The notes beneath the pieces are model-generated. The model saw nothing but the letters and a program-made list of their open reading frames with translations, was not told the origin of the DNA and made no database searches. Positions 11,347-58,200 of a stretch of DNA of 64,000 bases are shown here, one piece after another. Source of the DNA: Oikopleura dioica (taxonomy: Eukaryota > Animalia > Chordata); contig OU015568.1 in assembly GCA_907165135.1 (NCBI GenBank), positions 2,914,001 through 2,978,000 on the forward strand, in the 5' to 3' direction. The stretch's first letter is position 1. Every line of letters starts with the position of its first letter. A program made the translations under genes and the position numbers.

Positions 11347-13648
11347 ATGAAATTGTGCAGTACAGAGATGGCAGCAAAAAGCGTTATTTTCTTGTTCGGA
11401 TTGAATATTTTCCTGACGATTGGGCTTTCTTCTATGCTGGTAAGTTGAAAGAAGAAGGAGGTAGACGAAGACAAATTGAGAAATCTTGTCTGAAATTATA
11501 TTTTCTTTCTTCAGCATTTCTAAACTGAAAAGATAACAATTAATTATCTCTGCGAAATCAAATGATTGTTCGGACAAATTCCGACAAAACTTCAGCTCAT
11601 TATTATTTGTTTATTACCAAGCGGCTTTTGACATTTTCGGCCTTTCCGATCAGAGATAATTCATTTCACGATTGAGGAGCCACGCTTAAAAGAAAGTCTC
11701 AGAATCACGCTCCCCGTAAAAATTGACTTTTAACCAAGAGTTGGAATTCACGTTTTTTGAAATAAATTTTATCACTTGCCACTTGAACTTACACAAAAAT
11801 CAAGTGAAAGAGAAGTAAAAGAGAGGAGGGAGATGATCCCGAAGATTCACTGCCCGAGATCTACGATCACCAATTTTTTGGTGATCTCTTTATTTTTAAA
11901 TTTTGTTTCGGTAAGAAAATAGGTTGAGGGTCACTATAATTTATAGTCTATAAAAGCCCAATTATCAGCATCAATCTTCCGTTGAAAACCAGAGGATTCG
12001 GCCTTTTTGACTTCCTCTTTGATATTAAAATGATTCTTTTAGTTTTATGTTTACCGTGAGACGCTACTTCAAGTCAACGGCCAACACAACCACCAAGCTC
12101 GTTCAGTCCCAACGGCGGTTGTCGAAATGGATTCGCCAACTTTCAAGGGAATGTCCAATTCAAAGGATAGTCAAGGAAAAATCAACCCGAAAATAATAGA
12201 AACAGACGAGGCGCAACCTCAGAATTCAAAAAGAAAAGCTTATTTACTCGTGACGATGTACAGAAGCGGCAGTACGTTGACAGGAGAAATGTTCAACAGA
12301 AATCCGGACTTTTTGTACTACTTTGAGGTATGCCTTTTTCTGAAAAAATGATAAATAATGAGTGAAGCCACTTGCAATTTTTGGAAACAACAATGCTCCA
12401 CTTCAAAAGATCAAGATGTTGAACGATACTTTTCACTGTCATGCGCCAAATGCTGAGAATTTCAAGAAATATGCAAACCCAAAAGAATCCACGACAAAAA
12501 ATTGCCTGAACGAGGTAAGAACATGTTCACTGAATTTTTTTTTGGAAAATTTCATTCCGTTATTTTTAAGAAAAGTCACTGTTCATCCTCTTTTATAGGG
12601 AGTCTGCATGTACCAACTCTCAACTCGTTTCTGCAAGCCTCCATTTTGCTGGAACCCTGAAGCTCCGGCGACTCAGTGCAAGAAGCAATGCTCCCCACCC
12701 GGCTCAGATCGCGCAAAACTTGATCACATGGAGCGAATCTGCAAAGAAGAAGTGGATACAGTGGCAATCAAGACGATCCGATTCTTGGATTTGAAGCGGC
12801 TTCATCCTTTTTACGCAGATAGCTATCCGATTGATTTCAAAGCAGTCTTTCTTGTTCGTGATCCTCGGAGCATGTATCACTCCAGGTAGGGATGATCTTA
12901 CGTAACAACTATGAAGAAGGATTTCAGAAAGAAAATTCACCTTGAACTATTGCACGGAAAAGCGAATGAAATGGGCGGATTCATGAAGATGCTAGAGCAA
13001 GAATGCGACCTCGTCGCGCAGAACTTAGAGCTCTTGAGCAATACAAGGACTTTGGAATCAAGGAAGACCTTCTCTCTTCGATACGAGGTAGATTCGCCGA
13101 AGGGGGGGTATTTTTTCTAGATCGATATACTGATCACCAGAATAATTGTTTAATTTTTGTGAAATCAAATTTTAAATGTTTCTGATTTCACTGAAATATA
13201 ATGTAAAATTCCAAGATACGTATTAAGTAGGAAGTAACCGATCATTATCTATTTTTTTAGGATATCGCTCGGGACCCGATTAAATATTCCAAAGCAATCT
13301 ACAACTTCCTTGGCGAAGAATTCAACGACGAAGTCAGCGGATTCTTACACGATGCAATCGCTCCGCCAAAGAATAAGCTCGACAAATCAAAAGCTACTTA
13401 CACAACTAGCCGAGCTATCAACGAAACAACCGTAAAAAGAAAAGATAAAGCAGAAAAATGAAAATTTCCTTTAGATCTTGAACGGTTGGAGATTGGATAA
13501 AATGGTCAACCCGTCGGAACTAAACCAAATTCAAGAGAAATGCGCGAAAATGATGAAACTTGCCGGATACTTACCTATAAAGCCCGATCAAAAGAGAGAT
13601 TTAACAATTGAATCCGTTGATATAAAGAGCAAATACGGAAATCTGTAG
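11347..13648 (+). CDS. Golgi carbohydrate 6-O-sulfotransferase (CHST1/3-like), type II membrane protein
   Basis: Anchor exon MKLCSTEMAAKSVIFLFGLNIFLTIGLSSML; 5'-PSB YRSGSTLTGEMFNRNPDFLYYFE/PL; VAIKTIRF; 3'-PB FLVRDPRSMYHSR; LRYE/DIARDP. All introns are GT-AG. Confidence 0.9.
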
Positions 13649-13755: not shown

Positions 13756-15169
13756 ATGGCTGAGACCACTTCCAAAGTACCCTTTCATATGTAGATTTAA
13801 AACAGAAGTATGGAAAAGAAACTTATTTTTCTTCTTTTTGTCATTTTTTCATCGCCCTTTGCCTCCCGATATACCCACTCATCATCGCATTTCGAGGAGA
13901 AGAAGTTGATGAACCTGTGGTTATGAATGCGACGAGATATACGAGATTGAGTCCTGACGAAAATGATACGCTAGTAGATGAACCAGAGGTTTTGAATGCG
14001 ACGAAATATACGAGCTTCAGTCCTGATAAAAATGATACGCTCGCTACTGAGGAGGTGATAAACTTGGAAATTTCGGAATATACCGGTAAAGCTTTTCATC
14101 GTGGAAAATGGGTGGATGCTATTCTGTCACCGATACTTTTACGTAAGAAATTTTCTGGTGAACCAATGTTTTAAAAGAGTCAACTGGGGCTGCTTAAACT
14201 TTTGAGTGAAAGATCAAAATTTTCACCACCCGGCCATTTTGAAATTCAGATTATCTATTTTCTTTTAGACTATGAAGAGGCAAAAAATATTGCAAAGAAA
14301 ACAACAGTACAATGGTTGATTCGAAAGTCGACAATTTGATGCCCGCACCAAGGCATACTCGTCGATTATACAGTATTGCCTCTTCATAGTCTAAAAAGAA
14401 AATAGATAATCTGAATTTCAAAATGGCCGGGTGGTGAAAATTTTGATCTTTCACTCAAAAGTTTAAGCAGCCCCAGTTGACTCTTTTAAAACATTGGTTC
14501 ACCAGAAAATTTCTTACGTAAAAGTATCGGTGACAGAATAGCATCCACCCATTTTCCACGATGAAAAGCTTTACCGGTATATTCCGAAATTTCCAAGTAA
14601 AATTAATACTATTGGATAAGGGCAGAGTATTCTACAGATCTTGAAGGCCTCGAAATAGACGACGAGTACCGAATGAAAATACAAAGCGAGCTTGATCGCG
14701 AAAAAGAAAAACCTCTCGGAAAAATTCTCGTTCAAGTTGATACTCAACCTGACTGTGATATTCTGAAGGTAAATTAACTGATTATAATTAGTTATTAGAT
14801 GTTGTATAGGTAGTAATTAAATACAATTTCAAGCTTAACTCAACATTTGTTAAAAAACATCAGCTACTTGTGGGGCCGGACGTCAATCCTTACTGGAAAC
14901 GAGTAAATGATACTGCATCCAAGCACGGAAGGCTGATTCTTTCAGGATATTTCACAGGTAGTCGCGGAAATGCAATATTTTTTATCTTATTTTTTCATAA
15001 AGGCGATGAAATTGGTGATATTTCTTGGTGCCCTGGTAATCCAAATTATCTTCAAGGAGCGTTTATTTACGAGGACGATGTTTTCCTCGGAACAAATTCA
15101 AAAAGGTTAGGACTGGTTTTCAAACAATTCTTAATTTCATTTAGGGCTTATGCGATTTGTCTCCGCTGA
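13756..15169 (+). CDS. Type II membrane glycoprotein with a repeat stalk and a degenerate C-type-lectin-like C-terminus
   Basis: Hydrophobic FFIALCLPIYPLIIAF near the N-terminus; two 23-aa N-glycosylated repeats; phase-consistent exons ending ISWCPGNPNYLQ..AYAICLR-TGA. The lectin assignment rests only on WxPGxPN and the terminal AIC. The 29-nt first intron is tentative. Confidence 0.55.
13905..14042 (+). repeat. Two tandem 69-bp coding repeats
   Basis: VDEPVVMNATRYTRLSPDENDTL / VDEPEVLNATKYTSFSPDKNDTL. Confidence 0.9.
14062..14598. repeat. Long inverted repeat: arms 14062-14283 and 14376-14598, 92-bp spacer
   Basis: By manual comparison the arms are exact reverse complements except for one T in a homopolymer (TTCTTTTAG vs TTCTTTTTAG). 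Confidence 0.95.
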
Positions 15170-15789: not shown

Positions 15790-18681
15790 ATGAAAGAGCA
15801 AGTAGAATTGCTTAAAAGTCTGCGCAAACAATTATCAACCAATAAAAGATCCCGTATGGGGATCAGTTCTGTTTCATCTGGCGGCTACGTCAGTGGCGGT
15901 GGCCATTCCCGGAGTTTTTCCCGGCGTTTTGGCTGTCCGACCCTTCCTTCCCGAGCTGGAATAACATTCTTTATGTTCATCCTCTCCTTCGCGACAAATG
16001 TCTATTTCTACATTGAAAACCAAAACTTACTTCACAACTTGGCCTACAAAGAACTTCACGAAGCAGTCAAAGTTCAAGAATGCCAAAAACTGCTAGCCAT
16101 GAAATCAAAGAAGATTCAAGAGCAAATGCTCCAAGCATACGCTCACAAAAACAACCTAAACGGATTCATACCCATGCTTGACGACGATGACGGATTTGAC
16201 GATAACGTAGGCAAAGTTGATGGAATTCATGGAATGCCTATGCCCAAGCATTTGAATCTCCCGCAACCAGGAGTGAATAGGGCGCCAGCGTTGGTTCAAA
16301 ATAACGATTATGGGCACGAATTTGACACGCACCTCGACCAGGATTCTTCTGAAGCGCCGGAGCCGGATTTCGCGTATGATTTCGCGCAAGAACCGAATCC
16401 TAGAATCCAAGCGCCAGCGGCACCTGTGGACTCCTGGAATCAGCAAGTTGCTCTTCCCGCTGCTCCTGCGGCTCCTGTCCGATACGAATCGCCAGTGATC
16501 GACCCTCAGGAACAAGAAGACCGGGAAAAGGAACGAGAAGTGATTCAAAAACTAAACGACTTTATCGAAAATATCAACAAAAACGGCGGCGCGGAAGCAT
16601 TTGCGAATCAGCTAAAAGAAGAGCCGAAACTCGAGGCGCAAATCGAACACGTCCAGATGGCAGAGCAGATAATTTCTGATGCGGAAGACAATGGCAGCGA
16701 ACTAGAGGTCGCCGACACGCTTCATGAAATTGCTGAAGAAGTGGCTGAAATAGTCCAGGATCCAGTGATGGAGGACATTGTCGAGGCCCAAGATGACGGA
16801 GAGATCCAAGATGAGTTTGATGAAATCAAGGAAGAGACCCTTGATGAAACGGCTCAAGGGGATCCTTTCGAAGAGGCTGCTCCGGCAGATACTTCTGAAG
16901 AAACGGCTGACCCATGGGCTGCACAGGAAATTCCTCAAGAGCCGGAAGCCGCAGAACCAGCATTTGAGCTTCCAAAAGATTTTGGAGAGCCGGAAACTGG
17001 CGATTCCTTCGGTCAAGAAGAACAAGAAGAGAACACCGAGAACAATTACCAGAACGATAACTACGAGAACGATGACAATAACAACGAAGTTTTCCAACAA
17101 GAAGAGGAAAACGACAATGGTGAGATTGCAGACCCTTTCAGTTTTGGCGACGCGCCGCAAGAAGATGGCGGCGAAGATGATTTGTCAAAAAACTGGGAGC
17201 GCCCGATTGGGATTCAGGAGTCCCAATCGACGAGGGCAGAAAACCTCCAGACATCGGAGGAGAATATCCTGAACCAGGAGAACCAGCTGGCGGACTTCGA
17301 ACCGACGGTAAATCTCTTCTTCGTATTCATTAATATTCATAAATTTTTAGATGGAGCGACAACCGTTGCCCCAGGAGCCGGAGACGAGCTGGATGGAACC
17401 ACAACAACCGATAGTGGAACAACAACTACAACAGAGCACTCAACAACAGCAGCTCAGTGAAAATAGTGACGTTGATCCCCTTAAACCTGTTGTTGTCCTC
17501 GGCGGAGGAGCATCGCAAGCTGCTCTTGGCCAAAGATGGGACAACGAGGAAGACGAACTCATGCCAAATCAAGGGTAAAAAACCATATCTATCCTTCAAA
17601 ATCATTATTTTCATTCAGATTCGGACAAATCAACCCTTACAACCAATTCGGCCAATTCAACCAATTCGGTCAGCCAGTTCAGCAACCCTACGCCAACCAA
17701 TTCGGCATGAACCAATTCGGCCAACCAGTTCAAGTTCCAAAACCAAAGGAAGAAGACCCTGATGAGATAAGCCCCGTTCAGATCAAAAACGTACAATCCT
17801 TGGCTGAATCCGGAGGCAATGCGAGAGACTGCAATCATCTTTACAACCTTGGAGTTTCACAAAACGGAGTTTATATGATTCGACCAAGTCCTACCGACAC
17901 CCCTGTTCAAGCGAAGTAAGATATACAAAAGCCTTATCTTTTTAACTTTTTTTTCAAGATGCGATTTCCGCTACTCTGGTGGCTGGACCGTCATTCAGCA
18001 TCGTTTCGACGGCTCGGTTGATTTCAACAAGGACTGGGCCGCCTACGAAGCTGGTTTTGGCCAAGCCCAGTCCGAGTATTGGCTTGGCTTGGAACACATA
18101 AGCAAATTGTCAAAAGCTGCCGACACGAGAATAAGAATCGATCTCACCGACTTCCAAGGGCACAGTGCTTATGTCGAGCATGAGAATTTCTTCGTCAATG
18201 GACCGGAGGATAACTACAGGTAGACAGTAAAGAATTTCCTTTTTTACAATTTTTCTAGACTTCATGTTGGAATCAAGCGACACGGAGACTTAGGAGACTC
18301 TTTCCAAGTGACTTCTGGCGAGAAATTCACGACCTACGATCGCGACAACGATGGATGGTCCGGAAATTGCGCTGAAGACCTCCGTAAGTTCACAAAAGTA
18401 AGATTTCTCTAAAACGCTTCTCAGAGGGCGGAGGTTGGTTCTCAAAATGCTCGTACGCTAACATCAACGGAAAATACTATCCAACGGGGATTTCATCAAG
18501 AAGAGACGGTATTTATTGGGCCAAGTTTCCAGCGGATTACAGACCTCCAGGTAAAGTGCCTCTTTTCAGTCTAAACTGATCATCTTCTATAGATCCGGAG
18601 AAACCAGGCTACCGATTGAACTCGTTTTTCTACTCGATGAAAGAGATCAAGATTTCAATACTGGTCGATCCAAACAAATAG
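15790..18681 (+). CDS. Type II membrane fibrinogen-related-domain protein (FIBCD1-like topology) with a long acidic stalk
   Basis: TM ITFFMFILSFATNVYFYI; coiled coil; D/E-rich stalk; NQFGQ repeats. FReD: ARDCNHL..GVYMIRP/CDFRYSGGWTVIQHRFDGSVDFNKDWAAYEAGFG..EYWLGLE..FTTYDRDND..GGGWFSKC..NINGKY..YSMKEIKISI. The start may be ATG 15856. Confidence 0.9.
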
Positions 18682-29326: not shown

Positions 29327-29419
29327 AGTAACCTGTGTAAAAACCTGAGTCAGGGTTCTGAAAGAGCCATAATTAAAAAGCCGTTTCAGAACCCTGACTC
29401 AGGTTTTCTACACAAGCTG
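29327..29419. mobile_element. Short palindromic MITE, CCTGAGTCAGG family
   Basis: CAGTAACCTGTGTAAAAACCTGAGTCAGGGTTCTGAAA ... TTTCAGAACCCTGACTCAGGTTTTCTACACAAGCTG. Confidence 0.8.
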
Positions 29420-37051: not shown

Positions 37052-37622
37052 CCCCAACATTGTGCAAGTTAGCGTCTGGGCAAGTAAGCGTCAAAGTTGC
37101 CGGTTATATAAAATAATTTTTTTTTCTCGAAATTTTTATATCGAACACTGAATACAGTATTCAGAAAGTATAGGAGCCATTATTTCTAAGTTATTTAGAC
37201 AGAGGTTTGAGAATTCAGGCATTTTTTGTTCTAATAATAACGCTTCGAAATAATCAAAAATATTTTATTATAAATAATAAGAGCTTAGAAATTTTGAAAT
37301 CGACTGTCAAAATGAGTGTACTATCGGAGTACGAAAATATTATTTCAAAACGTTAAATTAAATTTGCTCAAAAGAAATGGAAAATATGACCGCTTTTCAC
37401 ACGGAAAGGTCGAGGTTAGATTCTACGAGGGGACTGACTGTCTACCAGACTAAGACATGCTGAAAGAGCCATTCAACGCTCCACGGATCGCCCACGCACT
37501 TTAGACGCTAACTTGCCCAAGACGCTAACTTGCCCAAAACGCTAATTTGCACAACCTTGGGGAAGTTAGCGTCTGGGGAAGTCAGCGTCTGGGGAAGTTA
37601 GCGTCTTGGGGAAGTTAGCGTG
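37052..37622. mobile_element. Foldback-like element whose inverted termini are built of 16-17-bp tandem units
   Basis: Left TTGTGCAAGTTAGCGTCTGGGCAAGTAAGCGTC (37060-37092); right (GACGCTAACTTGCCCAA)x3-like (37504-37554), then TGGGGAAGTTAGCGTC x4 (37557-37622). Confidence 0.65.
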
Positions 37623-39296: not shown

Positions 39297-45660
<6,364 letters not shown>

Positions 45661-55217: not shown

Positions 55218-58200
55218 AGAGGAATCTCGCAAGGGTGTGCGGCAAGGGACACGATACGGGAGGTGTCACGAGCAAGAGAGGGCTCTTTGCTGCGGTCCCC
55301 TCGTTGTTGCCCCCGTTATTGCACCTAGTACTGGAATGCGCCAAAAAACGTGATATAACATGGATTTTTTCTGAATCGATATTGAGAGTTTATAATTTAA
55401 GTAAAATTCATTTTTAGAAAATATTTTCTAAAAAGCCTTTTTGAACCAAAATTTCAAGAGCTAGAAATAGAGCACTCACTTTCGAGTATTTAAAGTGCCC
55501 TTTTCTTTTCTCGTTTTTACGACAGTTTTGTTGATACAGTGGTCTGAATCGACATTTTTGGATTCAGACGGAAAATATTTCTGAGAAATTTTTTTTTTTG
55601 ATGAATCGACAAAAATGGAAAAAAACGTGATAGATAAAATTTCACGCGCCGAAACGTTTGGCCAATTTTTTCAAATTGATTTTTGAAGCTCATAACGACA
55701 AGAAGAAACTATGATCTCATAACATTTAAAACATTTGGCGCGAAATTTTTGTTCAGTCATATTTTCCGTTCTTTCGTTTCATTTACTATCATTGTTTTAG
55801 GAATTGGAAATCCGACACTGGAAATATGTGCTTGCGCAGGAAAGAGGTGGCTCCTTAAAAATTAAGGGGGTAGCGTGAAAAAACGCGATTTTGGACTGGG
55901 CTTAGGTTTTCTTCCCTTTTGGCCGCCGCAAAATTGAGTAGAACAGTGTAAAATTTGTTAACGCGTTGATGGCCTTTTGGAGTCCACCTCCTTAAAAAAG
56001 CGCCGGGTTATCTGCGCCGCTGGGAAGTTTTAGAAGGCTCAAACACAGAAGGTTCCGAGAAGATGATTGAGGAAAGGTTATCAGCGCCCTAGTTACGATT
56101 ATCCGTTCACGAACAATTATGCCAATATTGTCTTTATTGCTTCGTATTCGTAGTTTTTTGTATATTTTTGGTACAAAGAGAGTTCATAGTTTTTCGTAAT
56201 GAAGTTGACTAAAGTACGAACCTACTATTATTAGCGCTAGAATTCAGTAATCGATGAAATAATTGGTTAACCCCTGCCCGCATATCGACCTACGCGTAGG
56301 TAAATTTTCTTTTAATCGCAATTATACTTATGGAAAAACGACATTTGTTCACGTTTGACATTTGACATTGGAAATTTGATCATGTCCAGAAGATAGCTCA
56401 GCCTTTTATCTTTCCATTCAAGTCCTTTCGAAAATTTTATCACGACTCAAAGACCCTTAAAGGGCCCGACCTACGCGTAGGTCGATATGCGGGCAGGGGT
56501 AACAAATTTTCCGTGCGGGCAGGGGTTAACTAAATATCGTTGATGTTGTAATTTAACCTAGATTCTGTGGTTGATTTGTCCTCTGCCAATAATTAATCGG
56601 CTTTTCGACTTTTTCGCAGTCTTGAAATCAAGGAATAATTTCTCAGTTCTTTGGATAAGGTGTACTAGAAACTGAAATTCGAAAACTCAAATCGCCGATT
56701 AAAGCCTCTATCTCCGATTTGCTTACACCCCCCATCCACCAGTAACCCGCCGCCCCTCCCTTAAGATAAAACATAAGAAGCCGCTCACCTTACGTGAGTC
56801 TTCGATTCTAAAAGCAAGAAATTTTATATTCGGTTATGATTCGCGCATAATCGCGAATTTCGCGACACGAAATCGAGCCGATATTCATCGAATAGAAGCT
56901 TGGTCAATATTTGAGTGGGATGTTTATGAGGTCATTCCCACGTTTTGACCCTTAATTTTTAAGTGCTTCTGATACCCTTAATCTATTTGACCAAAATAAC
57001 ACCAATAAGCTCTTGCTCAAAAAGGTCTTATTAGATAAATCAAATGTTATTAAGAAAAATAGGCAAATCTTTATAATATAGACTATATTTTCGAGCGCAT
57101 ACCCTTATTTTATTGACCGCTGCTAACCAAAATCGAAGGAGATACTTGCATACTTTCCCGTTCGAATGATTCCATCTGGTTCAACGCTCAACGTGCTGAA
57201 AGCATTCCAGTGGCTGGCCAGGAATCAAAACCGCACCACATTCCTGGGCCGCGTCGGGACACGGATCTTACACAGCTGATCTCGCCTTTTTCCTCGCGAA
57301 AAAGAGACCTTCCATGATCGTAAAATCAACCATTTTTCTTGTTATCCTAAATTTTCTGCAGAAAAAGCCCCATTCTGTAATCAAAATTTCAAAATGAAAA
57401 AAATGGAGAAAATCACGAAAATCGAAGCTTGTAAATATCCGAAATTCTAGAGACGACGAAATGTCGAACATCTTACGCGACAGTATACAACGTTGCGGAA
57501 TTCAGGTTCGTTTGTGGCTCGAACAAAAGCGGAAATAGCTTCTCCCTAAAGCTCCTTCCGAATTCAACTTGAAATGAAGATACTAAGAGAGTGCTTCTTT
57601 CATAATCTTCATTTCTAGGCTCATTTTCGAACGGTTAACCAGTCGACTGGAAAACGCTTGGTTCTTGCGACCAGACGTCAAAGGAATCGGTTCTACAGTA
57701 TTCACCCGTTTTTAAGGGTGTCACAATCATATTTCATAAAAGTAACTTATTCGACCAACCTTACTGTAGTGTCGTCTGACCAATGAAAATGTCCCGCTAA
57801 AATTAACCCTTTTTAATTTGATGCCCTAAATCTGACCAAAAATTAACCCTAACTACAGGTAGTACACAATGAAAATATTTTAGCTAAAAACATTTCGGAA
57901 CTCCGTGTTCACGTTATCATTTCCTCCACCATCAATAACCACGATAAGAATAAACAAAAAGGAAAAAGTGATCAAGGAGTACCGGCGTTTCCGCCCATCA
58001 ATATTATTAAAAGGGCCCTTCCCTGTTTCCAGCGCCCGTGTTTTCCGGCTCAAAAACAGCGAAAACGCGTGTCCCCTTTTCGATTCAATTTTCGACTCAT
58101 TTCAGAAGCTAGTTTATCCCGAAAATAGAACCGAATAAGAGGCCCTTATGTTAAACCAACCGTCGTGCGCTGTGAGCAGCCCCTAAAGCTTCCTTCAAAG

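Follow-up and report, generated by a model that had tools for sequence, protein, structure and literature searches.

A 223-nt inverted copy of adjacent exon-intron sequence within a coding exon of Oikopleura dioica, a likely scar of templated repair

Here, we describe an insertion in a gene of the chordate Oikopleura dioica, in which 223 nt of the gene's own exon-intron sequence recur as their reverse complement a short distance downstream of their source. The gene lies in a 64-kb stretch of the OKI2018_I69 genome (G000:C1:2914001-2978000; hereafter the window, to which all coordinates refer), a genome of 64.28 Mb in 19 scaffolds described in the report of the Okinawan O. dioica assembly (64.3 Mb, 19 scaffolds; PMC8008620). 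We propose that the inverted copy is most likely the mutational scar of error-prone repair and not a regulatory device. On balance, we favour a very recent origin by template switch or alternative-end-joining insertion, in a genome that lacks Ku and within a copy of the gene that is a decaying paralogue or a null allele.

An inverted copy within a coding exon

In a global alignment, positions 14376-14598 (223 nt) are the reverse complement of positions 14062-14283 (222 nt) without a single substitution, the sole difference being the length of a T-run in the polypyrimidine stretch ahead of the tttag acceptor, T4 in the template and T5 in the copy. A repeat search likewise gave 100% identity between 14062-14266 and 14394-14598, and one indel between 14258-14283 and 14376-14401; what a first-pass annotation of the window had said of the two arms is thus borne out by both methods. 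When the whole genome was searched with the arm, it matched at just two places, both of them the local arms. Self-comparison of the 64-kb window found no other inverted repeat comparable to the 14062-14598 pair, and in the 264 kb of genome surveyed for comparable inverted duplications (the window and a further 200 kb) the arms are the only one that is unique and gene-derived. The template sits 92-313 nt upstream of the insertion and is copied contiguously in reverse complement, and the 92 nt between the arms (14284-14375) make up the hairpin loop. The arms and the parts of the host gene are as follows.

Left arm (template): 14062-14283, forward strand; 81 nt from the end of exon 1, the complete intron 1 and 15 nt from the start of the next exon, all in their usual place in the gene
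Right arm (inserted copy): 14376-14598, reverse strand; 223 nt with one extra T, interrupting sequence that is coding in six relatives
Exon 1: 13810-14142, forward strand; signal-peptide-like start, two 69-nt (23-aa) repeats, -1 shift in the T6 run 13844-13849
Intron 1: 14143-14268, forward strand; GTAAGA...TTTAG, 126 nt, phase 1, at a position common to the paralogue L008
Middle exon, first part: 14269-14375, forward strand; YEEAK...RRLYS, -1 shift in the A6 run 14282-14287
Middle exon, second part: 14599-14769, forward strand; ..KN*YYWIRAEYSTDLEGLEIDDEY...DCDILK, in-frame TAA at 14604-14606
Downstream exons: 14834-14957 and 15003-15105, forward strand; LNSTFVKK...SGYFT and GDEIGDISWCPGNPNYLQG..., open and conserved with the paralogues
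Candidate intron of the first-pass annotation: 14373-14637, forward strand; GTATTG...TACAG, 265 nt (42 nt without the copy), in frame, given no support by the relatives

Relatives of the gene identify which arm is the newcomer. When the genome was searched with the GDEIGDISWCPGNPNYLQG exon, paralogues came to light on C5 and C1 (L008-L012), whose exons were lined up by exon-by-exon tblastn, and an exhaustive search yielded the ENA fragments P0010 and P0012. The comparison thus rests on six relatives, namely four paralogous loci, one of them with an annotated spliced model, and the two ENA fragments. Exons were searched one at a time, and the flanks of the insert were joined solely to check frame and alignment. 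The left arm is collinear with the paralogues L008 and L009 and with the spliced model P0011, which splices ...SL/P/YEEAK at the same point as intron 1 of the host gene; the earlier division of this arm into exon end, whole intron and exon start fits the intron position in L008 and P0011. Of the two arms, then, the left has the surroundings expected in this gene and the right breaks into conserved coding sequence, which marks the right one as the intruder. As the first-pass annotation had also argued, the template must have been DNA (or unspliced RNA), since the right arm keeps intron 1.

The sequence into which the copy was inserted is coding in the relatives. L008 and L009 run uninterrupted from YEEAK... 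to ...HIHR(Q/L)TFLYWIKAE(Y/F)S.DL.GLEINEE..., and there is coding read-through at the insertion point in L010 and L012 as well, in the model P0011 and in the fragments P0010 and P0012. Within the motif YWIxAEY, the residues Y, W, I, A and E are invariant in the family alignment (A3). In the window, positions 14610-14639 encode YWIRAEYSTD in the frame of the exon that follows ("exon 3" when the intervening stretch is read as an intron), and they are conserved as well as the flanking exons are. Judging from these alignments, the insertion site is the middle of an ancestrally continuous coding exon and not an old intron.

The ends of the insert invite a different interpretation. GTA stands at 14373-14375 and again at 14597-14599, which the first-pass annotation had read as a flanking duplication, and both triplets are indeed there. 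The GT of the second, however, is part of the templated copy, and the reading frame favours a clean 223-nt insert without any duplication, so the repeat is most simply a coincidence. These triplets, along with the abundance in this genome of elements with long terminal inverted repeats (TIRs), are what would speak for a transposable element with TIRs or a GTA target-site duplication. The same two facts about the second GTA count against such an element, as does the insert being single-copy, wholly made of the host gene's own adjacent sequence and devoid of internal TIRs. The copy number refutes this explanation, barring copies in unassembled sequence, and we give it practically no credence.

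The other long local inverted repeats in the 264 kb surveyed belong to two long-TIR families (L016:726-1326 and L027:9325-10000), with arms of 160-205 nt and spacers of 190-360 nt, each at at least 170 candidate places genome-wide with 79-97% identity. The window also contains MITE-like (miniature inverted-repeat transposable element) palindromic stretches of 80-190 nt with 75-83% identity (43754-43929, 37503-37621 and 29334-29414) and a 41-nt inverted repeat of 95% identity with a 167-nt spacer (56261-56301 and 56469-56508).

The host gene and the candidate intron

Upstream, the neighbouring gene ends at 13646, with an aataaa signal, and the ATG of the host gene stands at 13810, after an acag acceptor. 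P0001, a 137-aa ENA orthologue fragment that is 90% identical over exon 1 and continues into the intron as a genomic open reading frame (ORF), reads continuously from MEKKLIFLLFVIFF... to ...PIYPLIIAFRGEEVD, whereas the window copy changes frame inside the run of T at 13844-13849, which is thus one T short of an open frame. In the middle exon, the relatives read YEEAKxFC...MPIP...R in one frame while the window changes frame within the run of A at 14282-14287, indicating that this run too is one base short. The frame from exon 1 therefore terminates, as assembled, at the TGA at 14337-14339, and the earlier claim that the ORF stays intact fails on this stop and on the two shortened runs. If 14376-14598 (223 nt) is left out, the flanking frames join as ...RRLYSKN*YYWIRAEYSTDLEG..., with an in-frame TAA only 6 nt past the insertion; leaving out 224 nt breaks the frame. 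The middle exon is also without a Cys-rich block of ~43 codons that is present in all relatives. Given the in-frame TAA near the insertion and the two -1 homopolymer shifts, the host copy is most likely either a null allele or a paralogue that lost its function not long ago. Among the protein-database matches there is no annotated model of the host gene itself, though the model of a paralogue is there (CAG5109573.1, Oidioi.mRNA.OKI2018_I69.chr2.g4093.t1).

Two ways of mending the frame by splicing were considered and rejected. A non-canonical GA...AG intron could account for the frame change in exon 1, but P0001 reads through it, and an acceptor at 14279 would also mend the frame of the second exon, but it was rejected as the ancestral state since YEEAK is conserved in the family.

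The first-pass annotation had placed the copy just inside a downstream intron and had held that deleting it restores a normal intron of 41 nt. At that point, all six relatives have continuous coding sequence; deletion leaves 42 nt, which hold the in-frame TAA. By this comparison, the supposed normal intron is former coding sequence. The join of 14372 to 14638 does read in frame (...RRLYNLEGLE...), and so does a direct splice from 14142 to 14638, which had been noted and which we confirmed by joining the sequences. Removal of 14373-14637 would, however, delete the invariant YWIxAEY motif.

An unlikely alternative is that the gene is functional and that GT14373...AG14637 bounds a segment that became intronic recently and measured 42 nt until the insertion, in which case the copy and the TAA are spliced out, the frameshifts are sequencing errors and the hairpin may modulate splicing or feed double-stranded RNA (dsRNA) pathways. 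The in-frame GT...AG pair resembles the other splice sites of the host gene, the exons downstream are open and conserved, both frameshifts fall in runs of at least 6 (a classic Nanopore error), and the genome has loci with A_deamin and Dicer-dimer domains. Intronisation following a premature stop has, moreover, already been proposed as a route of intron gain (PMC3443670). Against this stand the lack of an intron at this point in six relatives and the 30 nt before the AG, which encode YWIRAEYSTD with the conservation of the flanking exons, so that the stretch was exonic until recently, as well as the loss of an invariant motif that splicing would entail. Chance alone should supply several in-frame GT...AG pairs in sequence this rich in AT. 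Runs of A6, T7 and T10 occur unshifted in other long ORFs of the window, and polishing therefore generally worked. The database, finally, has the paralogue's model and none that we found for the host gene.

A more specific version, which we consider a shade less likely still, is that of an intron caught at birth, in which repair filler and stop codon would both be removed by the latent GT14373...AG14637 pair, creating a 265-nt intron tied by the stem to the previous one. To our knowledge, O. dioica is the animal genome of highest known intron turnover.

Other features of the gene and its surroundings deserve mention. A 23-aa repeat of the form VDEPxVxNATxYTxxSPDxNDTL is encoded by two tandem 69-nt units (13904-14041) that are 87% identical and have two N-glycosylation sequons each; P0001 has the repeat as well. 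At the other end of the gene, the conserved C-terminus K-AYAICLR-stop (AYAVCLR in P0011) is reached only via a GG...AG intron at 15105-15144, the canonical GT at 15106 giving an unrelated 60-aa tail instead; 15105-15144 is thus a candidate non-canonical G*-AG intron. In the paralogue L009, an insert of ~120 nt with no obvious GT...AG ends (L009:549-669; G000:C5, ~720.5 kb) lies mid-exon, where L008 and P0011 are unbroken, and could be either a lesion or a non-canonical intron. Downstream, the neighbour at 15790-17460 and beyond is an acidic ORF of 556 codons, whose metagenomic relatives (P0003-P0005; ~800 aa, 64-67% identical) have a fibrinogen C-terminal domain.

As for the family, Pfam gave no match in any exon of the host gene or its paralogues, and scans of JGI metagenome contigs with exon 1 and with the middle-exon alignment found no relative. 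The AlphaFold model of the paralogue P0011 is unusable (pLDDT, the predicted local distance difference test, of 36). Language-model neighbours of the family, at 0.91 and on a low feature count, are mostly clusters of Lectin_C (PF00059), a domain for which Pfam gave no hit in the exons; we take this as a lead and no more. Within the reach of the searches, the family consists of small secreted proteins specific to Oikopleura, and it is possibly C-type-lectin-like.

Age, assembly and origin of the copy

The absence of substitutions among 222 aligned arm positions sets a 95% upper bound on divergence of ~1.35%, well below the 3.6% heterozygosity reported. By this bound, the insertion is younger than the typical allele pair, and it is probably polymorphic. 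Since the right arm has no further counterpart in the genome and is all but identical to its template, the insertion is either very recent or an artefact, a choice that the first-pass annotation had already put forward on the near-identity of the arms.

How the assembly was made bears directly on that choice. The OKI2018_I69 Nanopore library was prepared from unamplified DNA and sequenced to 221x; assembly by Canu was followed by polishing with Racon and Pilon and by haplotype merging with HaploMerger2, and only the Illumina reads used for polishing came from phi29-type whole-genome-amplified DNA (PMC8008620). The reference is consequently a mosaic of two haplotypes from an animal with ~3.6% heterozygosity, and the assembly paper itself cautions about homopolymers (PMC8008620).

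That the inverted copy was made in consensus, polishing or haplotype merging is, in our view, not probable. One route would be a heterozygous inversion of ~314 bp (14062-14375), within which the merged reference switched haplotype to give the order a-B-C-B'-D. The merged, heterozygous reference, its polishing with amplified reads and the anomalies of homopolymer length in the region are all in keeping with such an artefact. Speaking against it, the unamplified Nanopore data at 221x make it unlikely that the consensus acquired an artefact with a clean junction at either end of 223 nt in the interior of a 17-Mb scaffold. Fold-backs at the read level are palindromes of whole reads and not a 223-nt insert between normal flanks. 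Chimeras from amplification are individually rare and should not prevail in a consensus, and haplotypes would be expected to switch at the scale of contigs, not within 300 bp. The copy also fits the reading frame exactly, as an arbitrary mis-join need not, and there is no alternative haplotig of the locus in the 19 scaffolds.

If the copy is real, what process might have made it? During break repair or replication, a nascent strand ending at 14375 would switch template, copy 14283 down to 14062 as the reverse complement and return to the next base (now 14599) with no flanking bases lost, an event of the type "3-2-1-4". In the four-point template-switch model, events of this type create inverted repeats, and copied fragments are filtered at a minimum of 14 bp (Loytynoja and Goldman 2017; PMC5453318). 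The insertion has two features of such an event: it is a contiguous reverse-complement copy of nearby sequence, and the return is adjacent to the departure, with flanks collinear with the paralogues, the pre-event state being inferred from paralogues and protein fragments and not from orthologous DNA. One detail that may matter is that the switch at 14283 falls within the A6 run affected by the -1 shift. Additional templated patches were looked for in the flanks and not found.

The setting is that of a genome in which no Ku domain (PF02735) is detectable. O. dioica is reported to lack the classical pathway (c-NHEJ) of non-homologous end joining, to rely on microhomology-mediated end joining (MMEJ) and to gain insertions at repaired breaks (PMC12426944; PMC6635534; PMC11067885). 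The only strong family-A DNA polymerase locus in the genome is C2:9907815-9908945 (L003/L004); we tried to identify it as Pol theta and failed, its pieces matching bacterial Pol I best.

Several observations weigh against a recent templated insertion in a decaying gene copy. The insert, at 223 nt, is far from the size of templated insertions of the Pol theta type, which are usually <25 bp (PMC12426944). Junction microhomology, of which Pol theta would use 1-4 nt to prime each junction, amounts to at most 2 nt (GT/AC, on the 14598/14599 side), with none at 14375/14376, and bacterial Pol I ranks above both Pol nu and Pol theta among the solved relatives of the family-A locus. Given the size of the insert, the scant microhomology and the failed identification of Pol theta, we claim only a templated strand switch in repair or replication. 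The open, conserved downstream exons and the usable in-frame GT...AG pair enclosing both insertion and TAA sit uneasily with a dead gene. The insertion rests, furthermore, on one haplotype-merged assembly, in which two of the three exonic runs of at least 6 in the host gene are one base short and the single difference between the arms is also in a homopolymer, a pattern that looks like residual Nanopore error. The sequence here may therefore be of low quality, and the pseudogene reading may be mistaken as far as the frameshifts go.

Hairpin RNA and comparison with known systems

In light of its perfect arms, might the hairpin have a function? The RNA of 14040-14660 is predicted to fold at -425 kcal/mol (minimum free energy), shuffled sequences giving -130 +/- 5 (z = -56). 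If transcribed, the pre-mRNA would be expected to form a very stable stem of 222 bp, in which the donor and acceptor of intron 1 would be buried, while most of the next exon segment would fall in the 92-nt loop. Loci with an A_deamin domain and with a Dicer-dimerisation domain were found in the genome, which would make editing or dicing of the hairpin possible in principle. The first-pass annotation had suggested endogenous small interfering RNAs, ADAR editing, in-frame exon skipping or silencing of the gene by itself as possible outcomes. The predicted fold, together with the Dicer-like domain, is what one would want of a long hairpin RNA (hpRNA) precursor, and thus of a selected locus for endogenous small interfering RNA (endo-siRNA) or a proto-microRNA (proto-miRNA) that arose by inverted duplication of a target gene. 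We nevertheless regard selection for such a role as very unlikely. The arms are identical, the event therefore being too recent to show selection; the arm sequence has no other match in the genome, which removes the paralogues as targets; the stem is intronic over half its length; and the locus matches no Rfam family. A tRNA scan of the window was likewise empty. On present evidence, the hairpin does not reveal a new regulatory mechanism.

If confirmed by reads, the insertion would be a natural case of templated insertion or template switching, unusual in being so long (223 nt) and so clean, in a chordate without classical end joining. It would also show what raw structural variation such repair feeds into genes, namely perfect hairpins, disrupted exons and possible precursors of introns. 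There is, in addition, a caution here for the annotation of genes in the OKI2018_I69 assembly, since a plausible GT...AG "intron" proved to be conserved coding sequence.

Among known systems, the closest parallel to the recent templated insertion that we favour is the four-point template switch (types 3-2-1-4 and 1-4-3-2), whose published events are short-range, whereas here 223 nt were copied along with a whole intron. MMEJ by Pol theta, or theta-mediated end joining (TMEJ), is similar in using a template in cis within a few hundred bases, in allowing reverse-complement copies and in a host without c-NHEJ, but it differs in the typical length of its insertions, in the microhomology, which here is 0-2 nt, and in resting on a polymerase that we could not pinpoint in this genome. 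The long-TIR or foldback elements of the same genome (L016 and L027, above) are comparable in having arms of 150-200 nt a few hundred bases apart; they are multi-copy, while the inverted copy described here is single-copy host gene sequence. Loci for hpRNAs and proto-miRNAs share with it a long, perfect and transcribable inverted repeat derived from gene sequence. Drosophila hpRNAs and young plant MIR genes, however, stand apart from the genes that they target and are kept by selection, whereas this copy is inside its own source gene, is half intronic and has no sign of conservation. Finally, the insertion resembles the proposed cases of intronisation (PMC3443670) in that extra exonic DNA has a short direct repeat at both ends and a premature stop falls between latent GT...AG sites; it differs from them in that splicing here would delete an invariant motif rather than restore the coding sequence.

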